From contig NW_005434529.1 in NCBI RefSeq assembly GCF_000315625.1, positions 69,154 to 133,153 of the forward strand: DNA of 64,000 bases, written 5' to 3'. A program made the position numbers and the translations under genes. Each line of letters starts with the position of its first letter. Within the stretch, counting starts at the first letter, position 1. Positions 34,045 to 63,630 of this stretch are shown piece after piece. The notes beneath the pieces were generated by a model that was not told the DNA's origin, searched no databases, and was given only the letters and a program-made list of their open reading frames with translations. The stretch comes from Guillardia theta CCMP2712. Lineage: Eukaryota; Protista; Cryptophyta.

Positions 34045-34144
34045 NNNNNNNNNNNNNNNNNNNNNNNNNNNNNNNNNNNNNNNNNNNNNNNNNNNNNNNN
34101 NNNNNNNNNNNNNNNNNNNNNNNNNNNNNNNNNNNNNNNNNNNN
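34045..34144. other. Assembly gap (100 N)
   Basis: Run of N. Confidence 1.
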
Positions 34145-52876: not shown

Positions 52877-55800
52877 ATGGAGAAGGGAAGGCGACGTAAG
52901 ATTGAGTATGTCGTAAAAGTTATTCCTTGGATCCATGCCAAGTTCATAACTGCATTTTTCGCAGATGAAAGAAGAATTGACCGAATTTCTGGTTTTGCCA
53001 AGTAAATCGAACAGGAAATTGTTCCTCCAAAAAATTTCCGAAACCGTTCAGCTGGAAGAAAGCAGAAGACCTGCATTGAACTTAGCATCTGCCAAGGCTT
53101 TGCTGCAGTTTTTCGAAGATGTGTGTTAACAAACAAGATTGCATTCTTCACTGTTTTTGAATTGATTGCAGGAGTCAAAAAAAGCAAATTTTGACAGTTT
53201 TCGTTCAGTTATGACCCTAATTTACGAGTATGCAATTCCTGAGGTAACTGTATTCACGCAAATCGATTGCTGCTAACACCATTTCCTACATAGGAGGACT
53301 CGAACTCAGCAATGTTGTCCGTATCGACATTGAACTCAGCGCAACTCAACAAGACTGTTGGAGTTGCATACAAAAACTTGATGAAGAATAATTTGAGCAA
53401 GCCGGAACCTGAAGAGGCAGCACTGCAAGCAATACTATCTTTGTTAAAAATGATTGCTTCGTTGACTGAGAATGACATTTGCTGTGCGTTGCTTCTGAAT
53501 TCTTGGCGACTTGGCAGTGACTTGTTTTTCTGACAGCTAGCTCATCTACCGCCATGGAGTGTATGACAATGATCCATAACGATTGGATAAAGCGAGATTG
53601 TTCGTTCGACGTGCGATATACCGCTTTCGATGTCTTAGGAGCATTTGCCAAAAACGTAAGTGGTTATCTCATCTGGAATTGATGACACCTCCCTTCACAG
53701 CCTGAAAATGTCAAGCTTTATTGCTCTCCACCTCGTGAAGCTGAAACGAAAATCTTCGAAATTCTTAATGGTGCAATCGACAGGTTGAATGAATTGCGCA
53801 AAGTGGATTTTGTCTCATGATCTTTCCCATTTACAGCTCTTTGCCAGTATGCGAAGCAGCCCTCAGTTGCTTGTATTCCATTTTTGAGATATTGGACAAA
53901 GATACGCTGTCAAAGGTGAATCCGGTTTTGGAATCGTTCACCAAGTGGGTAGCGGGGCGGGAGAAAAACTCTGTTTCGTGTTTTTCTGTGGACAATATTC
54001 GAAATACTTTCATGGGATGGGAAGATAAACAAAATGTCAAGGCAGCTGCAAAACTTTTATTTAAGGCAATGAACAAAACATATGAGGAAATACAAGCAAA
54101 GAGCATAGGTACTTTCAGTTGGATTTGATATCGAGTTTGTGATGTAGCTTTTGCGTGCAGTTGTCGGCGACATAGAGTATTTTGCTTCCGAGGTCTCAAT
54201 CAAGCGATTACGAATGATCAGAATCTGATTCTGTTGACAGGAAAAATTGTATATCACGTCCGAAAACCTCTCAGTCTGGCTGAGTCCTGACAGAGATGAT
54301 GATGGAGTAAGATTGCCTGATTTGTGTGATATAGGCTGAATAAGCTCCAGACAAATTCATCAATAATGCATGTATCCCTTGATCAAATTTCTGCCGCAAA
54401 CAGAATGGGAAACAAGAATTCTTTCTCTATCAAATTGCATTTGTTGAAAGACCTCCAAAACTGCTTTGGGCAGAATAAAGTGAAGAAGAATGAGGTGAAT
54501 TTTGAAGATACATGCTTTGCACTGACGTGCTATTCAGATAATCATTCATATGCGAGATGATGATAGTATCGAATCCTTTTTATGCCTCATGCCATTTGCA
54601 GAAGCTTGTAACATAACACGCTCCCAAGAATCAAAATCGACGCGTTGTGGCATACGCTAAATATTTGCAAAGTGCACATTTGATTCCATCCTTGCAGACA
54701 TTGCTATCATGGACAATCATGGCAATATCGTTCTTCCACCTCCATCAGCTCTGAGTGAGAACATCAAAACATCTGAGGCCCATACTGGGCCAACAGGTTT
54801 GCAGAGATGCTTGAGCAACAGAAATAGAACTTACCTATGGTTTGAAACGTACAGATTCATCGGCCCTGCAGCATGAACTCGATCACAACTATGAACATGG
54901 TATGACGGTAATCTTTTTGTCTATCATCAAGTGAGAGAGCATGTCAGGGGGAGAAGCTCTCTGCACACCCACAGAATTGATCGAGCAGCATAACTCTTCT
55001 CGAAATGTAATTTCCTCTGAGAGAAGCCAATCCAGCCAAAGCCATGCCAAATCGTCTCAGTCCACTTCATCTGAAGAGAAGGAATGTCATATCAGATCAA
55101 AAACTCCAAAGAGGTCCAATGAACAAGGTGAGTTCTTTGCTTTGCCACATTGCAAAATTGATGTTGTTGTGCCAAGATCGGAAGGTGTCCAAAGGTATTT
55201 GAAGTACCTCAGGATGACAGCTAATGAAGAAACCAGGTGGAAAGCGAACAGGAAACAAATCTGTAGGGAAAAAGACATCCTCAGATATGAAAGGTAAAGT
55301 TTAAGCATAATTTCAGGTGTTGCAAGGCTTTTAATCTTCAGACACAGCTGCAATAATTCAAACGTTTCCACGTCTTCCTCCCGTTGCAAATGATTCTTCA
55401 AACAAACAAATGCAAAAAGATCGATATAATTGCACAGGCTCTTCAACAACAAACCCTGTGGAGGACTCTCCTTTTGACAACAGTGACGGTCACAATCAAA
55501 CGACCCAACTGAGCCCAAGATCATATTCTAGGCCGGTGAAAAGCACCAAAGGAGCTTCGACCAAAGGTTTGCCCTCTGTCGATGCTGGCTGCCCAAGCAT
55601 AGGCCTGGGTTGACGCCCTGAATAGATAAGGTCTCCAAGAAAGATAACGAGAAGGCTCCGCAAGCAGACAAGCCGCTCGCAAGAGACGAGGAGACATCGA
55701 AGGCAGATCCTGCCCCCAGGACCAGCGCCAAAGGAGCTTCGACCAAAGGTTTGCCCTCTGTCGATGCTGGCTGCGACAAGCCGCTCGCAAGAGACGAGGA

Positions 55801-58577
55801 GACATCGAAGGCAGATCCTGCCCCCAGGACCAGCACCAAAGGAGCTTCGACCAAAGGTTTGCCCTCTGTCGATGCTGGCTGCCCAAGCATAGGCCTGGGT
55901 TGACGCCCTGAATAGATAAGGTCTCCAAGAAAGATAACGAGAAGGCTCCGCGAGCTTCGACCAAAGGTTTGCCCTCTGTCGATGCTGGCTGCCCAAGCAT
56001 AGGCCTGGGTTGACGCCCTGAATAGATAAGGTCTCCAAGAAAGATAACGAGAAGGCTCCGCAAGCAGACAAGCCGCTCGCAAGAGACGAGGAGACATCGA
56101 AGGCAGATCCTGCCCCCAGGACCAGCGCCAAAGGAGCTTCGACCAAAGGTTTGCCCTCTGTCGATGCTGGCTGCGACAAGCCGCTCGCAAGAGACGAGGA
56201 GACATCGAAGGCAGATCCTGCCCCCAGGACCAGCACCAAAGGAGCTTCGACCAAAGGTTTGCCCTCTGTCGATGCTGGCTGCCCAAGCATAGGCCTGGGT
56301 TGACGCCCTGAATAGATAAGGTCTCCAAGAAAGATAACGAGAAGGCTCCGCAAGCAGACAAGCCGCTCGCAAGAGACGAGGAGACATCGAAGGCAGATCC
56401 TGCCCCCAGGACCAGCGCCAAAGGAGCTTCGACCAAAGGTTTGCCCTCTGTCGATGCTGGCTGCCCAAGCATAGGCCTGGGTTGACGCCCTGAATAGATA
56501 AGGTCCCCAAGAAAGATAACGAGAAGGCTCCGCAAGCAGACAAGCCGCTCGCAAGAGACGAGGAGACATCGAAGGCAGATCCTGCCCCCAGGACCAGCGC
56601 CAAAGGAGCTTCGACCAAAGGTTTGCCCTCTGTCGATGCTGGCTGCGACAAGCCGCTCGCAAGAGACGAGGAGACATCGAAGGCAGATCCTGCCCCCAGG
56701 ACCAGCACCAAAGGAGCTTCGACCAAAGGTTTGCCCTCTGTCGATGCTGGCTGCCCAAGCATAGGCCTGGGTTGACGCCCTGAATAGATAAGGTCCCCAA
56801 GAAAGATAACGAGAAGGCTCCGCAAGCAGACAAGCCGCTCGCAAGAGACGAGGAGACATCGAAGGCAGATCCTGCCCCCAGGACCAGCGCCAAAGGAGCT
56901 TCGACCAAAGGTTTGCCCTCTGTCGATGCTGGCTGCGACAAGCCGCTCGCAAGAGACGAGGAGACATCGAAGGCAGATCCTGCCCCCAGGACCAGCGCCA
57001 AAGGAGCTTCGACCAAAGGTTTGCCCTCTGTCGACACTGGCGAGTCACTCATTGTTGTTGCTCGATTGGTGGTACAGATTGCTTAGAGAAGGGTTCGAAT
57101 GGAAGATGTTTGATAGATCCCTTTGACATTGATTTTGGTTTGTCACCACCAAAGTCGCTTCGACGTCCGTTTAGGAATAGATTCGGCAATCACAAGCGCT
57201 ATTCTGATCGCACCACCAAATGGGTTTTCGAGGAAAGCTCTCCGCGGAAGGGGAGTGGAGATGGTTCGCCTCCACAAGATGTGTCACGAAATGACATGTT
57301 AGGATCAACGGTGGAAGAATTTGAGGAATCACGCCCAGCGATGAAAGATGCCAAGAATACAATCGAAAAAAACCATCAAGAATTGAGTCGATTGTCCTCT
57401 AAGAAGAGGCAAGCATCAGATGATACTTCTCTCAACACTTCTGAGCGGGCAGCCAAGGTCAGCAAAAAGACAAAAGGTTCTGCAGAGAGTGACTCAAAAG
57501 TGAAATCAAAAGTACAGCAAAAACCAGTGGACCCATTTGCAAAAACTTTTCAACTCGTATGTCAGTCTGAGACCACGCCAGAAGAGGCAGATCCACATGT
57601 CATATCTTCGGATAGTGGAAAGGGACCAAAATCTCAGAAACTCAGCGAGAGTGCAATCAGCAATTTGCGAACATTGCCAAAAAGTCAAACTTCGGACTCA
57701 AGTTATCTTAACCAGTATCCTGCGAAAGAAAAGAGGGGGTCTACGATTCAAATAGCAAAGGAGGACGAGAATCTTAGCGAATGTGGTACTCTTTCGTCTT
57801 TGGAGAATGATCTCAAGCCCAAAATGCTTCTCTTCAGTCCGCACCACAAGCGCAAGTCATTTGAAGTACAGAACAAAACTCAAAAACGATTGAAAGCAGC
57901 GGACGAGCTCATTCGGATTGATGTCAATTCGTTCGACGACGATGATACAGCATCCGATTTTTCACAGAACAACATGTTTGTCGAAAAAGTTGAGGCTCGC
58001 ATTAAGCTTGCCTTCAGCCAGATGGCAAAGGTAAGTTTTTCACTTCATCTTCGTAGAATCTAATTCGAAATGCCATGTGAAGAGGAAGAGAGAGTCCTTG
58101 GCACAAGCCATATTGGGAGAGAAAGATTCAATGTCTCATGAAATTTCTGCCTTTGTTATGGCTTCAAAGGGTAAACTCGACGCAGCACAAAAGAAACATG
58201 ATTCGGAGAATGGAAGGATTACCGCACGAGGGAAAGAAATCTTGACAACTTTTACAAACGTCTACGAAGAATACAAACGACGAATGATTCACGTTCATCG
58301 CACGGTCAAAAGTCTGGCATCAGCCAAGGCGGCACGACGGGAAGTATCCGAAGTGAAGAGAAATGAGTTGTTCGATCAAGCCAAGTCTGGACCTGCCAGC
58401 TTGAAGGCTGCATGTATGGCAGAGGTAATGTTCTTCCAGCACTTGCATAAAACGTGTCACGTTGATGATCTGCAGGCGGAGAAGCTCGAGAGGCAAATGG
58501 CTGGGGACAAGACAGGCAAGGGAACAGATATCAAGGAGCTCAACAACCTGCTGGGACAACTGTTCCAAACCGACTAG
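52877..58577 (+). CDS. Probable SYCP2/SYCP3-family meiotic chromosome axis protein (helical ARM-like + beta-rich N-terminus, disordered repeat middle, C-terminal coiled coil)
   Basis: Helical exons 52970-54110, beta-rich exons 54150-54500, S/K/E-rich middle, and C-terminal coiled coil ...RIKLAFSQMAK/KRKRESL...IKELNNLLGQLFQTD*, reminiscent of SYCP3 (LAKRKRL...LQSMLF). Family call is by-eye inference. Confidence 0.5.
55540..57035 (+). repeat. Compound tandem array of exon-intron units (six identical 59-nt introns)
   Basis: Repeated ACCAAAG|GTTTGCCC...GTTGACGCCCTGAATAG|ATAAG, with introns ending at 55625, 55915, 56025, 56315, 56497 and 56787. Confidence 0.9.
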
Positions 58578-58710
58578 ACCCTCATAGTCTTAAGTTTGAA
58601 ACAGGGACGAGGGCTCACCAACGCCGTGAGACTTCATGAATAGGTTTGAGAACAGAAATTTTGATGGTATAGAGAAGATGATGAAAATGAAGAAGCCCAA
58701 TGCAACTCCG

Positions 58711-61700
58711 TCAGTCTGTCCTCTGTTTGCTGTCAAGGCTGCTTGAAGCGTTAGAATCACAAATGGAGACATTGGAAAGGGAAGATACAGACCTCTCTTG
58801 GGCTTCCTGCGGTTCTTCCATAGCAGTCTCAGACGATTCTACGCGGTCTGTGAGGGGAGGGTGGGCGGAGGCGGAGGAACCTGTTGACTTGATCGACTGC
58901 TCGACGAACTCGGCGATGATGACTCGGAGAGCATGGCAGGGGATGATCTGACGAGACGAGGACGAGGCGCGTGAGCAAGAGGTGGCGGGAGGGAGGGGGA
59001 GGAGACCTGACTTCGATTGACTATCTGGTTCGTCTTGGGGGAGGTAGAGTGATGCCTGAGCCAGCGATCTTGTGGAGCAGGTAAGAAGACGAGGAGTGAG
59101 GACGGGAGGAGACCTATGGCTGCTCGCTCGTACACGTGACCGTCTGTGAGGATGACTGGATCTCTCATAATCTGCAGGGAAGTGAAAGGGGGTGGGGCGG
59201 GAGGAGCATGCGATTACCTCCATGGTGATGGGGCAGAGGTACTCCGTGGGGACCGACAGGCCTCGTTCCTGCATGCGACAGTCAGGTAGAGGTAGGAGAA
59301 GGCCTGTCGAAGTTCAGCGACGACGAGGAGGAGGAGAAGCAGAGGAGATGGGGAAAAGGCGGCAAGAAGAGCAGAAGAAGTGCCTCAAGCAGGGTCTTGA
59401 TCGAGATCTCATTGGCGTCCTCCGCGTCCTCCTTGTCTGGACTGCAAGTCAGGAAAGCAAGCAGACACTTTCATCTCTCACCTGCTGCCTCCGCCTCCTC
59501 CCTATGGGGCTGCGGCTCTTCAGCTTCCAACCCGCTCTCTTCCCTCCTCTCCCTCTCCTCCCTCCTCTCCCTCGGCGGCGTGGAGCTCCTGCCTGCTGCA
59601 CGACCAGGACGAGAGTCTGACGGGAAAAGTCACGGGAAGAGCTGAAGGCGGCAAGGCCGGGAAGAGAAGCGGAGGATGGAAAAGGAAAGAAGAAAATTGG
59701 GGCGAGGTATGGGAGAGGGAGAGGGAGAGGGAGAGGGAGAGGGAGAGGGAGAGGGAGAGGGGGAGGGCGAAGGGGGAAGGGGAGGGAGAGGGGAGGAGAT
59801 GTTGTCTACGAAGGCTCCTTGCCTGTCCTTCTCTCACTCTCTTCCGCATCTTGGGGACCGCACAGTCCCCACACAACGATGGCGAGCTGAAGGGGAAGGA
59901 AGATGCTGTCAAGAAGTGCGCTCGCTTTGCTCTTCTTCTCCTCTCCCGTCTCGATCGCAAACTCCTGCTGCACTCCAGCTGACTTGTTGTGTGCGGGGAC
60001 TGACGTGCTGTTGAGATGGAGAGGCGAAGCGAGGAGAACGAGGCCTCCGCTCTCAAGGAAGGAGCACAACGACAGCTCCGCCGACTGAGATGCTGTGAGG
60101 AGACGGGAGGGAATGGGAGAGGGGAGGGCAGAAAGGAGGCAGAAGAGGAGGAGAAAGGGGGGAGTAGAGGAAGGAGAGGGAGTGTCGAGTACCAGGATCA
60201 AGCCAAGCAGGATGATAGACCGGATCCCTTGCAACACCGACGAGCCGCTTCCTGCCGCCTCCTCCTCTGCAGCAGCCTCCTCCGAATTGATGAGCCTCCC
60301 CCAGCCTCCTCCTCCTCCTGCCACCACCCCCATGTGCTCGCTGCTCCGAATCTGCGGCATCTCAAAGCCCGCGGACCTGCCGGCACGCCAGGAGAGCGGA
60401 GGAGCCTGAGAGCGAAGGGCGAGGAGAAGAGAAGCTGCGAGAAGAGGCAGAGGCGCGCAGGTGACGAGCAGGAGCGGCCCGAAGGCTGAAGCCCACGAAA
60501 GAGACCCACCCCCCAGATAGGCGACGTCGACCTGAAGCCAGGGGTGAGAAAGGGAGGGAGGGAGGCAGGCAGGGAGGGAGGGAGGGAGGCAGGCAGGGAG
60601 GGAGGGAGGGAGGGAGGGAGGGAGGATTGTTCGTGTTCGTGTTACTTGCCATTACTTTGATGATGGCAAAGAGGGAAGCAGAGGAGAGGGCAGCGACGTA
60701 AAGGCCCCACCTGATGAGCGTCAGAGCAGGATGGAAGAGATAGAGAAAGTCTCACTTGACGCCATGCTCGCGCTGGCTCTTTGATAAAAGATGGTGCGAA
60801 GAGAAGAGAAGGGAAGCAGGAGAGGAGGGGAGGGAAGGGAAGAAGGAGATGATGGGGGGGAAGGGAAGAAGGAAATATCAGAAGACCGTTGACGAGGAGC
60901 TGAAGACTCACGGGGGACGGGGGCGCCTCCGACTGAGGAGCCTCGAGATGAGTAGCGAGAGCTGAAGAAAGAAAATGAGAGGGAGAGAAGGAGGGAGGGA
61001 AGAGAGAGGGGGGGAGGAGAAGGTAGGAAGAGAGGCGGGGGGAGAGAGGGGGAGAGAGATGGTGGGGGTGCAAGAGTTTGTACCTGTCATAGCAGAGACA
61101 AGAAGGCAGAAGAAAGAGACAGCGAGAGGAACGAGCAGCTGCGAGCACATCAGGCTTGTCAGTTGCTGGTGCCATCGACCTCCCACTCCTCGCCCGGCCT
61201 GATGAAGTGAATCTGAAGCTGCAGCCCAACCTACAGAATGCTGACAAGGTGGAAGGCAGGAGAGGAAGAGGAGAGGAGGAGGAAAGACATGGGGGAAGCG
61301 AGAAGGAGAGAAGGAGAGAAGGAGGGAGGGAGGGAGGGAGGGAGGGAGGGAGGGAGCAATGCATCCGAATGTTTCTTGTTCTCACCATCATGATGAATCC
61401 TAACCCCAGCGCCTGCTAGTCCATCATAGATGTTCAACAGCAGCAACATGCAAGACCTGCGATAGGGCAGAAGCGATGGAGGAGACTGCGGACCCCCAGT
61501 AGCCGCAGGCGCAGCACCCGTGCTCCACATGCTCCCACTCCCTTCCTCTCCTCCACGCGAGGCGCTCAAGCCTCTCGTTTCTCTCCCTCCTCTCTTCCTC
61601 GTGTTGAGCTCCCAACGCCAGCTCGACCCCAGCGAGCATGCGAGGGATGGAGGAGAGGAAGAGAAGGTAGAGGCCAAAGCTCCAGGGGGGGAAGAGGACA

Positions 61701-62456: not shown

Positions 62457-63630
62457 GATGAAGATGTAGATGTTGGTGCTGATGGTGCTAGTGATGAAGA
62501 TGTAGATGTTGGTGCTGATGGTGCTAGTGATGAAGATGTAGATGTTGGTGCTGATGGTGCTAGCGATGAAGATGTAGATGTTGGTGCTGATGGTGCTAGT
62601 GATGAAGATGAAGATGTTGGTGCTGATGGTGCTAGTGATGAAGATGTAGATGTTGGTGCTGATGGTGCTAGTGATGAAGATGTAGATGTTGGTGCTGATG
62701 GTGCTAGTGATGAAGATGTAGATGTTGGTGCTGATGGTGCTAGTGATGAAGATGTAGATGTTGGTGCTGATGGTGCTAGCGATGAAGATGTAGATGTTGG
62801 TGCTGATGGTGCTAGTGATGAAGATGAAGATGTTGGTGCTGATGGTGCTAGTGATGAAGATGTAGATGTTGGTGCTGATGGTGCTAGTGATGAAGATGTA
62901 GATGTTGGTGCTGATGGTACTAGTGATGAAGATGTAGATGTTGGTGCTGATGGTGCTAGTGATGAAGATGTAGATGTTGGTGCTGATGGTGCTAGCGATG
63001 AAGATGTAGATGTTGGTGCTGATGGTGCTAGCGATGAAGATGTAGATGTTGGTGCTGATGGTACTAGTGATGAAGATGTAGATGTTGGTGCTGATGGTAC
63101 TAGTGATGAAGATGAAGATGTTGGTGCTGATGGTGCTAGTGATGAAGATGTAGATGTTGGTGCTGATGGTGCTAGTGATGAAGATGAAGATGTTGGTGCT
63201 GATGGTACTAGTGACGAAGATGAAGATGTTGGTGCTGATGGTGCTGGTGATGAAGATGTAGATGTTGGTGCTGATGGTGCTAGTGATGAAGATGTAGATG
63301 TTGGTGCTGATGGTGCTAGTGATGAAGATGTAGATGTTGGTGCTGATGGTGCTAGCGATGAAGATGTAGATGTTGGTGCTGATGGTACTAGTGATGAAGA
63401 TGAAGATGTTGGTGCTGATGGTGCTAGTGATGAAGATGTAGATGTTGGTGCTGATGGTGCTAGTGATGAAGATGAAGATGTTGGTGCTGATGGTGCTAGT
63501 NNNNNNNNNNNNNNNNNNNNNNNNNNNNNNNNNNNNNNNNNNNNNNNNNNNNNNNNNNNNNNNNNNNNNNNNNNNNNNNNNNNNNNNNNNNNNNNNNNNN
63601 GATGTTGGTGCTGATGGTGCTAGTGATGAA
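62457..63630. repeat. 36-bp minisatellite (about 29 sequenced copies before a 100-N gap at 63501-63600)
   Basis: Unit GATGAAGATGTAGATGTTGGTGCTGATGGTGCTAGT. Confidence 0.95.

Follow-up and report, generated by a model that had tools for sequence, protein, structure and literature searches.

In human LPA, kringle IV type 2 is a coding repeat that varies in copy number and whose unit carries its own introns. Introner elements are transposon-like introns that have spread through algal genomes and lie dispersed among unrelated genes. The Rogers model of intron gain by tandem duplication has been described for a vertebrate gene (PMC3265369), the potato RdRp gene (PMC4974935) and Drosophila (PMC2891723); in these cases, a duplicated exonic AGGT supplies both the donor and the acceptor of a new intron that is made from former exon.

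Here, we describe a tandem array of about 1.5 kb, located in a window of 64,000 nucleotides from contig NW_005434529.1 of the cryptophyte Guillardia theta CCMP2712, that resembles each of these systems in part. The explanation that we favour, and hold to be reasonably probable as a whole, is that the array is a coding minisatellite inside a lineage-restricted gene of a cryptophyte, in which a cassette of one exon and one 59-nt intron has been multiplied and the 59-nt segments are removed as introns.

Host gene and relatives

The predicted host gene lies on the plus strand, with an ATG at 52965, a stop codon at 58577 and about 20 predicted introns. It was modelled by a search constrained by reading frame and indels that admitted short introns only, replacing a minimum-intron model with introns of up to 130 nt that proved implausible. 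At 55128–55251 the sequence can be read either as a pair of introns flanking an 18-nt exon or as a single intron of 124 nt. In the product, a conserved N-terminal part is followed by a low-complexity middle, where the array lies, and then by a C-terminal part that is helical. Searches of Pfam and the PDB with several exons gave nothing above noise, and so lent no support to an assignment to the SYCP2/SYCP3 family. Whole-library and word-based protein searches for a spliced product or an annotated model returned only an open reading frame of the relative described below and a protein from Hanusia phi, and a protein search with the array peptide gave no match. The unique exon downstream of the array (57078..58030) encodes a protein 93% identical to P0001 of the relative and 57% identical to the Hanusia phi protein. 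The gene calls of the relatives (P0001 and P0003) and of Hanusia phi (P0002) read through introns.

The relatives are two metagenome contigs (L001 and L002) that differ from each other by about 1% and match the window at about 95% identity; an exact DNA pattern search and a protein-pattern scan of metagenome contigs found no others. Both contain one long unit, and in each the contig runs straight through it. Compared with L002, the exons diverge by 4.4–4.6% and show indels of 3 and 72 nt only, with L001 being similar, while the predicted introns diverge by 7–12% and contain all indels of the gene whose length is not divisible by three. The array exon differs from that of the relative by two synonymous changes and one replacement.

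Layout of the array

The donor motif CCAAAG/GTTTGCCCTCTGTCGA occurs 11 times in the array and nowhere else in the window, with its GT at 55567, 55749, 55857, 55967, 56149, 56257, 56439, 56621, 56729, 56911 and 57019. Counted from donor to donor, there are ten units (55546..57034, plus strand), which follow one another as L S M L S L L S L S; the length of L is 182 nt, that of S 108 nt and that of M 110 nt. Among the ten units there are no more than five different sequences, and only two sites vary across the whole array; at 98–99% identity, Tandem Repeats Finder gives periods of 108, 110, 182, 290, 400 and 472.

Six of the units hold a candidate phase 1 intron of 59 nt with GT and AG ends and a GC content of 59%, located at 55567..55625, 55857–55915, 55967–56025, 56257–56315, 56439–56497 and 56729–56787, and these six copies are identical letter for letter. 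A seventh segment of 59 nt (57019..57077), here termed intron 7, shares its first 16 nt with the other six, differs in its 3′ part and is predicted to join the unique downstream exon. Intron 7 marks the original boundary of the array on its 3′ side.

In the four 108-nt units, whose donors lie at 55749, 56149, 56621 and 56911, the donor and the initial 26 nt of the intron (55749..55774, 56149–56174, 56621–56646 and 56911–56936) are fused to exon, and the sequence would read GLPSVDAGC followed by DKPL if the donor is unused. What separates L from S is a stretch of 74 nt (55593..55666) made up of the last 33 nt of the intron and the first 41 nt of the exon. A source for these 74 nt was sought elsewhere in the window and in the upstream exon without a significant match, and comparison with intron 7 and the downstream exon was likewise not significant (P 0.09). 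The M unit (55857..55966) is present once and corresponds to L minus 72 nt (24 codons) of exon. With the 59-nt segment subtracted where present, the coding lengths of the units are 123, 108 and 51 nt, all multiples of three and arranged head to tail. The original prediction, which described 11 donor motifs, six identical 59-nt segments and four donor-only units, is thus reproduced exactly as regards layout. It also placed all splice sites in one phase, and all donors and acceptors are indeed in phase 1; this common phase provides no independent evidence, because it arises automatically when one cassette is copied.

The 59-nt segments as candidate introns

Removal of the seven 59-nt segments gives a stop-free frame of 761 codons, from 55335 to 58030, that links both unique flanks, so that the seventh segment rejoins the downstream frame as had been proposed. 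If the segments are retained, each brings in stops, and the read-through frame reaches a stop both in the window and in L001. The repeat unit has six stop triplets on the plus strand, and they all fall within a single stretch of 27 nt, four of them in the 3′ half of the segment and two no more than 5 nt beyond its AG. Codon-usage log-odds trained on the unique exons of the gene favour the proposed frame of the long exon by 13.8 and 20.9 nats and the read-through frame of the short unit by 10.2 and 11.5 nats; the other two frames have negative or mixed values, and the intron read in the proposed frame scores negatively.

In L001 and L002 the orthologous segment is 43 nt long and retains GT and AG around an internal deletion of 16 nt; when it is read through, an in-frame stop follows. 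The length of the segment (59 nt, or 43 nt in the relative) compares with 44–58 nt for the other predicted introns of the gene, and the predicted intron at 54797 also has a GTTTGC donor. The plausibility of such short introns is further supported by the neighbouring gene, in which splicing of a 54-nt intron is observed directly. Intron 7 diverges by 15% from its counterpart in L002, compared with 4.4% for its flanking exons. In their ends, length, splice motif and restoration of the frame the segments look like spliceosomal introns. Base composition and divergence are not intron-like, although the 16-nt indel is: the GC content of 59% lies above the 33–47% of the other introns outside the array (53% for intron 7), and substitutions set the segment 7% apart from the relative, which does not clearly exceed the 4.6% of the exons. 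The earlier proposal that the 59-nt repeats are introns is supported in that the segments behave as introns in the tests of frame, stop placement, codon usage and indels in the relative.

An alternative is that the expanded array is wholly or mostly spliced out from the first or an early donor to the acceptor at 57077, in which case the expansion would be neutral DNA within an intron, with a protein that still resembles that of a single unit. Pairing of 55567 with 57077 is in frame and stop-free and adds no linker residues, the donors are all identical, the sequence contains nothing that would impose pairing between nearest neighbours and the one-unit form is evidently functional in the relatives. 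However, the roughly 19 other introns of the gene measure 44–59 nt (with the possible exception of 124 nt), which points to pairing across short introns, and an intron of 1.5 kb would be far outside this range. Exon lengths have also stayed multiples of three through two deletions, one of 74 nt with compensating read-through and one of 72 nt. The array exons show good codon usage as well. Neutral DNA would need neither feature, although in so young an array this argument is not a strong one. Excision of the array as a single large intron is in our judgement quite unlikely, and removal of each 59-nt segment as a short intron is the preferred reading.

The original prediction further stated that any donor–acceptor pairing keeps the frame. 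This is formally true. Among the 2544 conceivable splice patterns, 324 lack stops, and these would produce linkers of 40 different lengths, from 0 to 366 residues. A more far-reaching version of the minisatellite would have it hypermutable, with the numbers of copies and introns shifting within the culture history of a single strain and the eleven identical donors and seven acceptors being combined in various ways. If so, a single allele would give rise to a family of proteins with linkers of 0 to 366 residues. We consider this version rather improbable.

RNA over the locus

Splice junctions over the array were sought in RNA contigs from two runs (X1 and X2) and in a further RNA run (X17), and none was found. 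The X1 and X2 contigs retain the 59-nt segment. Depth is 12.1 on the long path and 10.7 on the short one, and these two account for the 21.4 of the part that they share, so that no depth is left over for a spliced path. Every other plus-strand intron of the gene that these contigs cover is unspliced too, and the downstream contigs continue without a break into a spliced minus-strand exon of the neighbouring gene. For these two reasons the contigs from this gene probably stem from antisense or unprocessed RNA, and they constitute weak counter-evidence to splicing because they do not sample mature sense mRNA. Sense-strand mRNA of the host gene was not seen in the X1 and X2 contigs or in X17, and the raw reads of X17 are almost silent on this gene. 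In vegetative cultures the gene thus seems not to be expressed. The only splice junction seen in the RNA contigs is that of a 54-nt intron (58739..58792, minus strand) in a convergent U-box gene, where X1 and X2 have loose ends at 58740. This U-box gene is the only one nearby on the minus strand and ends at about 58590.

The possible antisense origin of the RNA raises the question of whether the repeat is coding or otherwise functional on the minus strand, or is a non-coding satellite, the plus-strand frame then being a by-product of composition. All three minus-strand frames are open across the array, with open reading frames of 434–518 residues, and a 182-nt unit lacking minus-strand stops is unusual (P about 0.001 in dinucleotide shuffles). 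These open reading frames nevertheless stop at the borders of the array, and the relatives have a single unit in which the 16-nt indel shifts any minus-strand frame. A plus-strand gene is consistent with the frame on that strand, with its codon usage and with the conservation of the flanking exons, and the sole minus-strand gene in the vicinity ends short of the array. A minus-strand role or a satellite nature of the repeat is accordingly very improbable.

Copy number

The nearest assembly gaps, at 34045–34144 and 63501–63600, are both far from the array. The array, or the number and order of its units, might be an artefact of assembly, with one or a few units at the true locus. Such a view draws on the DNA run X13, in which the flanks are identical to the window and the data fit a single long unit without the short junction. 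The contigs of X13 end at 55575, 55546–55582, 56243–56447 and 57005, exactly as in a k=31 graph without a short or M branch, and its cycle depth of 4.84, compared with 2.7–6.7 for the flanks, corresponds to one long unit. For the stretch 55745–55985, which includes the short and M units and the M junction (55922–55982), no indexed run contains all of the sampled words (shares of 0.5–0.77, the best run reaching 0.77), a coarse measure as it involves only 22 words. The exact copy number, the order of units and the M unit are confirmed by no run. The short-read contigs all break inside the array.

On the other hand, X1 (2018) and X2 (2014), which come from different studies, both contain the short junction (55745–55804) and the long path (55563–55696) at several times the depth of the flanks. 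Since both unit types occur in these runs, a multi-unit array exists outside the assembly; moreover, assemblers usually collapse tandem repeats and seldom expand them. An artefact is therefore unlikely, and a real array of several units is the reading that we retain. The presence of both unit types is borne out by X1 and X2; the count of ten, the order of units and the M unit are those of the assembly. Copy number thus differs among relatives and runs, with one long unit in L001, L002 and X13, both long and short units at several-fold depth in X1 and X2 and ten units in the window. As the relatives, at about 5% divergence, and X13 have one long unit and the six introns of the window are free of differences, the expansion is very recent; it is also apparently polymorphic.

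Proposed origin and processing

We propose that the ancestor had one 123-nt exon, encoding a charged low-complexity stretch of 41 residues, between two mini-introns that have about 50 nt in common across the exon–intron boundary. This one-exon state is still present in the two relatives and in X13. In the lineage of the window, the cassette of intron 1 and exon (182 nt) would then have been multiplied by unequal exchange or replication slippage. Deletion of 74 nt, comprising the 3′ part of the intron and 41 nt of exon, would have created the in-frame, donor-only derivative of 108 nt; the long–short dimer (290 nt) would have expanded next, and an in-frame deletion of 72 nt would have produced the single 110-nt unit. 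Each 59-nt segment would be spliced as a short GT–AG intron, paired across the intron just as the 44–58-nt introns elsewhere in the gene would be, and the result would be up to 366 additional disordered linker residues between the N- and C-terminal parts. The sequence data document the anatomy of the array, the logic of its frame, the pattern of conservation and the recency of the expansion; we infer this splicing, any combinatorial choice among sites, the exact copy number and the fate of the short-unit donors.

The original prediction saw here a recent intron gain by tandem duplication. Its recency is upheld, the relatives having a single unit, but an existing intron was copied and none was created. 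An existing exon–intron cassette has been multiplied and no new intron has been made from a duplicated exon. The route, multiplication of a cassette by tandem duplication, is already known and no new mechanism is involved.

Comparison with known systems

Recent changes in intron number that can be dated well are rare. At this locus the states before (one cassette and two introns) and after (ten units and seven predicted introns) both occur in near-identical genomes, and the copies are undiverged. The locus thus offers a natural test of how a spliceosome adapted to introns of about 50 nt treats a row of identical splice sites, of the fate of donors without an acceptor and of the rate at which such an array changes.

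As in the Rogers-type cases, a tandem duplication spanning splice signals has added splice sites and candidate introns, and its recency is evident from relatives that lack the duplication. In those cases splicing has been demonstrated, whereas the introns of the array are predicted from sequence. The array also differs in that a pre-existing intron, present in the unexpanded relatives, is copied six times together with its exon, rather than a new intron arising from a duplicated exon between two AGGT copies, and in that its short units carry extra copies of the donor with no acceptor to match. The presence in one genome of numerous young introns that are identical or nearly so recalls introners, but here the copies are limited to one tandem array and each is accompanied by its own exon; no copy was found outside the array within the 64-kb window, in contrast to the dispersal of introners among unrelated genes. 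The array has the properties of a coding tandem repeat, namely units that are multiples of three, a coding signal and variable copy number. Like the LPA repeat, and like tandem exon duplications generally, it consists of an in-frame exon–intron cassette repeated head to tail in variable number, with a protein whose length would scale with the copies. Unlike the LPA repeat, its unit of 108–182 nt with a 59-nt intron is smaller by a factor of about thirty, the encoded stretch is disordered and of low complexity instead of being a folded domain and its complete units are interleaved with deletion derivatives that have no acceptor.

Array structure

The tandem repeat at 55546-57034 on the plus strand matches the original prediction to the base, with 11 donors, six identical segments and a seventh that matches them in part. 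The 22-nt donor motif occurs 11 times, all between 55561 and 57034, and has no other copy in the window. Six 59-nt GT..AG segments, the first of which is intron 1 (55567-55625), are letter-identical, while the seventh (intron 7, 57019-57077) has its first 16 nt in common with them. Measured from donor to donor, the array consists of ten units, five long (L, 182 nt), four short (S, 108 nt) and one of 110 nt (M), in the order L S M L S L L S L S, with five distinct sequences and only two variable sites among them. Tandem Repeats Finder reports periods of 108, 110, 182, 290, 400 and 472 at 98-99% identity. The array is dominated by the 290-nt L-S dimer. Relative to an L unit, S lacks 74 nt (the last 33 nt of the intron and the first 41 nt of the exon) and M lacks 72 nt, all exonic.

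On its minus strand the 182-nt unit is free of stop triplets in all three frames, and minus-strand open reading frames of 434-518 residues run across the array (55567-57018). Dinucleotide shuffles of the unit contain a mean of 4.6 such stops, with a probability of about 0.001 of containing none. We offer no explanation for this openness beyond a T-poor, purine-rich coding strand.

Host gene and relatives

A predicted model for the host gene, with an ATG at 52965 and a stop at 58575-58577 on the plus strand, came from an intron-chain search that had to respect open frames as well as the indels that separate the window from a relative. Fifteen introns of 44-58 nt each are predicted 5' of the array and two 3' of it (58031-58082 and 58425-58475, plus strand). 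The model is ambiguous at 55128-55251, which may hold two introns flanking an 18-nt exon or else be one intron of 124 nt; the 120-codon open reading frame at 54935-55294 appears open yet conceals at least one intron, and also contains two mutually compensating 1-nt indels relative to the relative, 48 nt apart. Pfam and PDB searches with every exon tried assigned the protein to no family.

When the exon that follows the array was searched as protein against the whole library, it matched two relatives, a metagenome open reading frame (93% identity) found on two ENA contigs, L001 and L002, and the EukProt protein P0002 of the cryptophyte Hanusia phi (57% identity to that exon). These matches place the window in a cryptophyte close to Guillardia and Hanusia. 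L001 and L002 come from two separate samples, differ from each other by 45 substitutions and match the window at about 95% identity along 5.7 kb. The transcriptome-derived P0002 has in-frame insertions beginning with V (GTx) exactly at the window introns 58031-58082 and 58425-58475 and terminates within the second, so that it looks like the translation of an unspliced or antisense transcript. The exon immediately upstream of the array (55366-55440) has 72 nt (24 codons, in frame) more than in L001 and L002 and, at 15%, is the most diverged of the gene, indicating that the low-complexity middle of the protein evolves fast outside the array too.

Intron status of the 59-nt segments

Frame, stop placement, codon usage and the contigs of the relative all speak for the 59-nt segments as probable introns. 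Deleting all seven leaves a single stop-free frame of 761 codons that links the unique upstream and downstream exons, whereas with the segments left in the frame runs into stops. The six plus-strand stop triplets of the unit are confined to a 27-nt stretch, four in the 3' half of the segment and two no more than 5 nt past its AG. Codon-usage log-odds trained on the unique exons of the gene prefer the proposed frame by 13.8 and 20.9 nats for the L exon and by 10.2 and 11.5 nats for the S unit; the 59-nt segment read in this frame scores negative. We gave greatest weight to L001 and L002, in which a 16-nt deletion shortens the orthologous segment to 43 nt and leaves its GT and AG unchanged, and in which read-through meets a stop. 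Throughout the gene, the indels that are not multiples of three (1, 11, 1, 1, 2, 2, 1, 1, 2, 1 and 16 nt) all fall in predicted introns, the only exon indels being of 3 and 72 nt, and divergence is 7-12% in introns and 4.4-4.6% in exons. The organism does use introns of about this length, as a 54-nt intron of the neighbouring gene is spliced in RNA contigs. Two properties count against an ordinary intron: the GC content of the segment is 59%, compared with 33-47% in the other introns of the gene outside the array, and its substitution divergence (7%) is not clearly above that of exons.

RNA over the locus

The public runs X1 (2018) and X2 (2014) contain RNA, as both carry the spliced minus-strand junction 58739-58792. 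In both, the array is present unspliced, and the contig depths leave a spliced path no room, since 12.1 on the long path plus 10.7 on the short path accounts for the 21.4 of the common part. Their contigs are also unspliced at every other plus-strand intron covered (55128-55176, 55195-55251, 58031-58082 and 58425-58475), and those at 57731-58740 (X2) and 58007-58740 (X1) continue into the minus-strand gene's spliced exon. This convergent neighbour (58590-59260, minus strand) encodes a U-box protein (CPITMEVI...DPVILTDGHVYERAAI) with a hydrophobic C-terminal tail, and its stop lies about 15 nt from that of the array gene. Leftwards from it the X2 depth declines steadily from 222 to 5.8, 2.8, about 1.5 per array copy and finally 0. 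The simplest reading is that the RNA over the array is antisense read-through or unprocessed RNA and not mature sense mRNA. In X17, a raw, stranded RNA run, there are 30 reads, almost all at the 3' end.

The RNA contig of the U-box gene (X2 depth 222) extends at least 860 nt antisense into the last exons of the array gene. Downstream of the U-box domain region, 59535-59800 holds a (GGGAGA)n microsatellite of 14 copies together with CT-rich 9- and 18-nt repeats.

Age and polymorphism

L001 and L002 are each continuous across a single L-type unit, with a donor followed by the 43-nt intron, the 123-nt exon, another donor and intron 7; the short-unit junction is absent from both. The flanks in the DNA run X13 are those of the window except for two homopolymer indels. 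Its contigs end at 55575, 55546-55582, 56243-56447 and 57005, exactly where a 31-mer graph would end them if its path ran from the upstream exon through the shared 37 nt, intron 1 with the exon and the shared 37 nt again to intron 7; no graph branch occurs at the L/S or M points, and the cycle depth (4.84) is that of single-copy sequence (2.7-6.7), with the shared 37 nt at about double (9). These ends and depths fit a data set holding one long unit. X1 and X2, which come from other studies and other years, contain the S junction (55745-55804) as well as the L path (55563-55696). The array therefore exists independently of the assembly and differs among data sets that represent one organism or nearly identical ones, so that this very young array is apparently polymorphic. 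Among indexed public runs none held all sampled 31-mers of 55745-55985 (best 0.77), and the copy number, the unit order and the M unit rest on the assembly, unconfirmed by any run. Metagenome runs from aquatic, mangrove and freshwater sources contain 0.14-0.32 of these 31-mers, which hints at wild relatives carrying parts of the repeat unit.

Proposed origin and comparison with known systems

The unexpanded form already has two introns with about 50 nt in common across the exon-intron boundary, which suggests an earlier partial duplication. Multiplication of the L cassette would have followed in the lineage of the window, and the S unit would have arisen by the 74-nt deletion, losing the acceptor but holding the frame both ways: read through, it gives 36 codons with no stop, and its donor paired with the next acceptor gives a 167-nt intron that keeps the frame. 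As the introns of the gene are about 50 nt throughout, each 59-nt segment would be expected to be removed singly, adding a charged, low-complexity linker of at most 366 residues. By formal count, 324 of the 2544 possible splice patterns contain no stop, and these yield 40 linker lengths. The phase common to all sites, which would permit the use of more than one pattern, follows from copying one cassette and is no sign of design.

The original prediction of intron gain by tandem duplication holds in that intron number has been raised through multiplication of a cassette; it does not extend to a new intron from exon sequence. With splicing, the main claim, still inferred, we regard the locus as a clean, very young case of rising intron number by tandem multiplication of an exon-intron cassette. 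In the window no copies lie beyond the array, so it is not introner-like. It is akin, yet not identical, to the model in which duplication turns exon sequence into a new intron (PMC3265369, PMC4974935, PMC2891723), and it resembles the intron-bearing coding repeats of animals.
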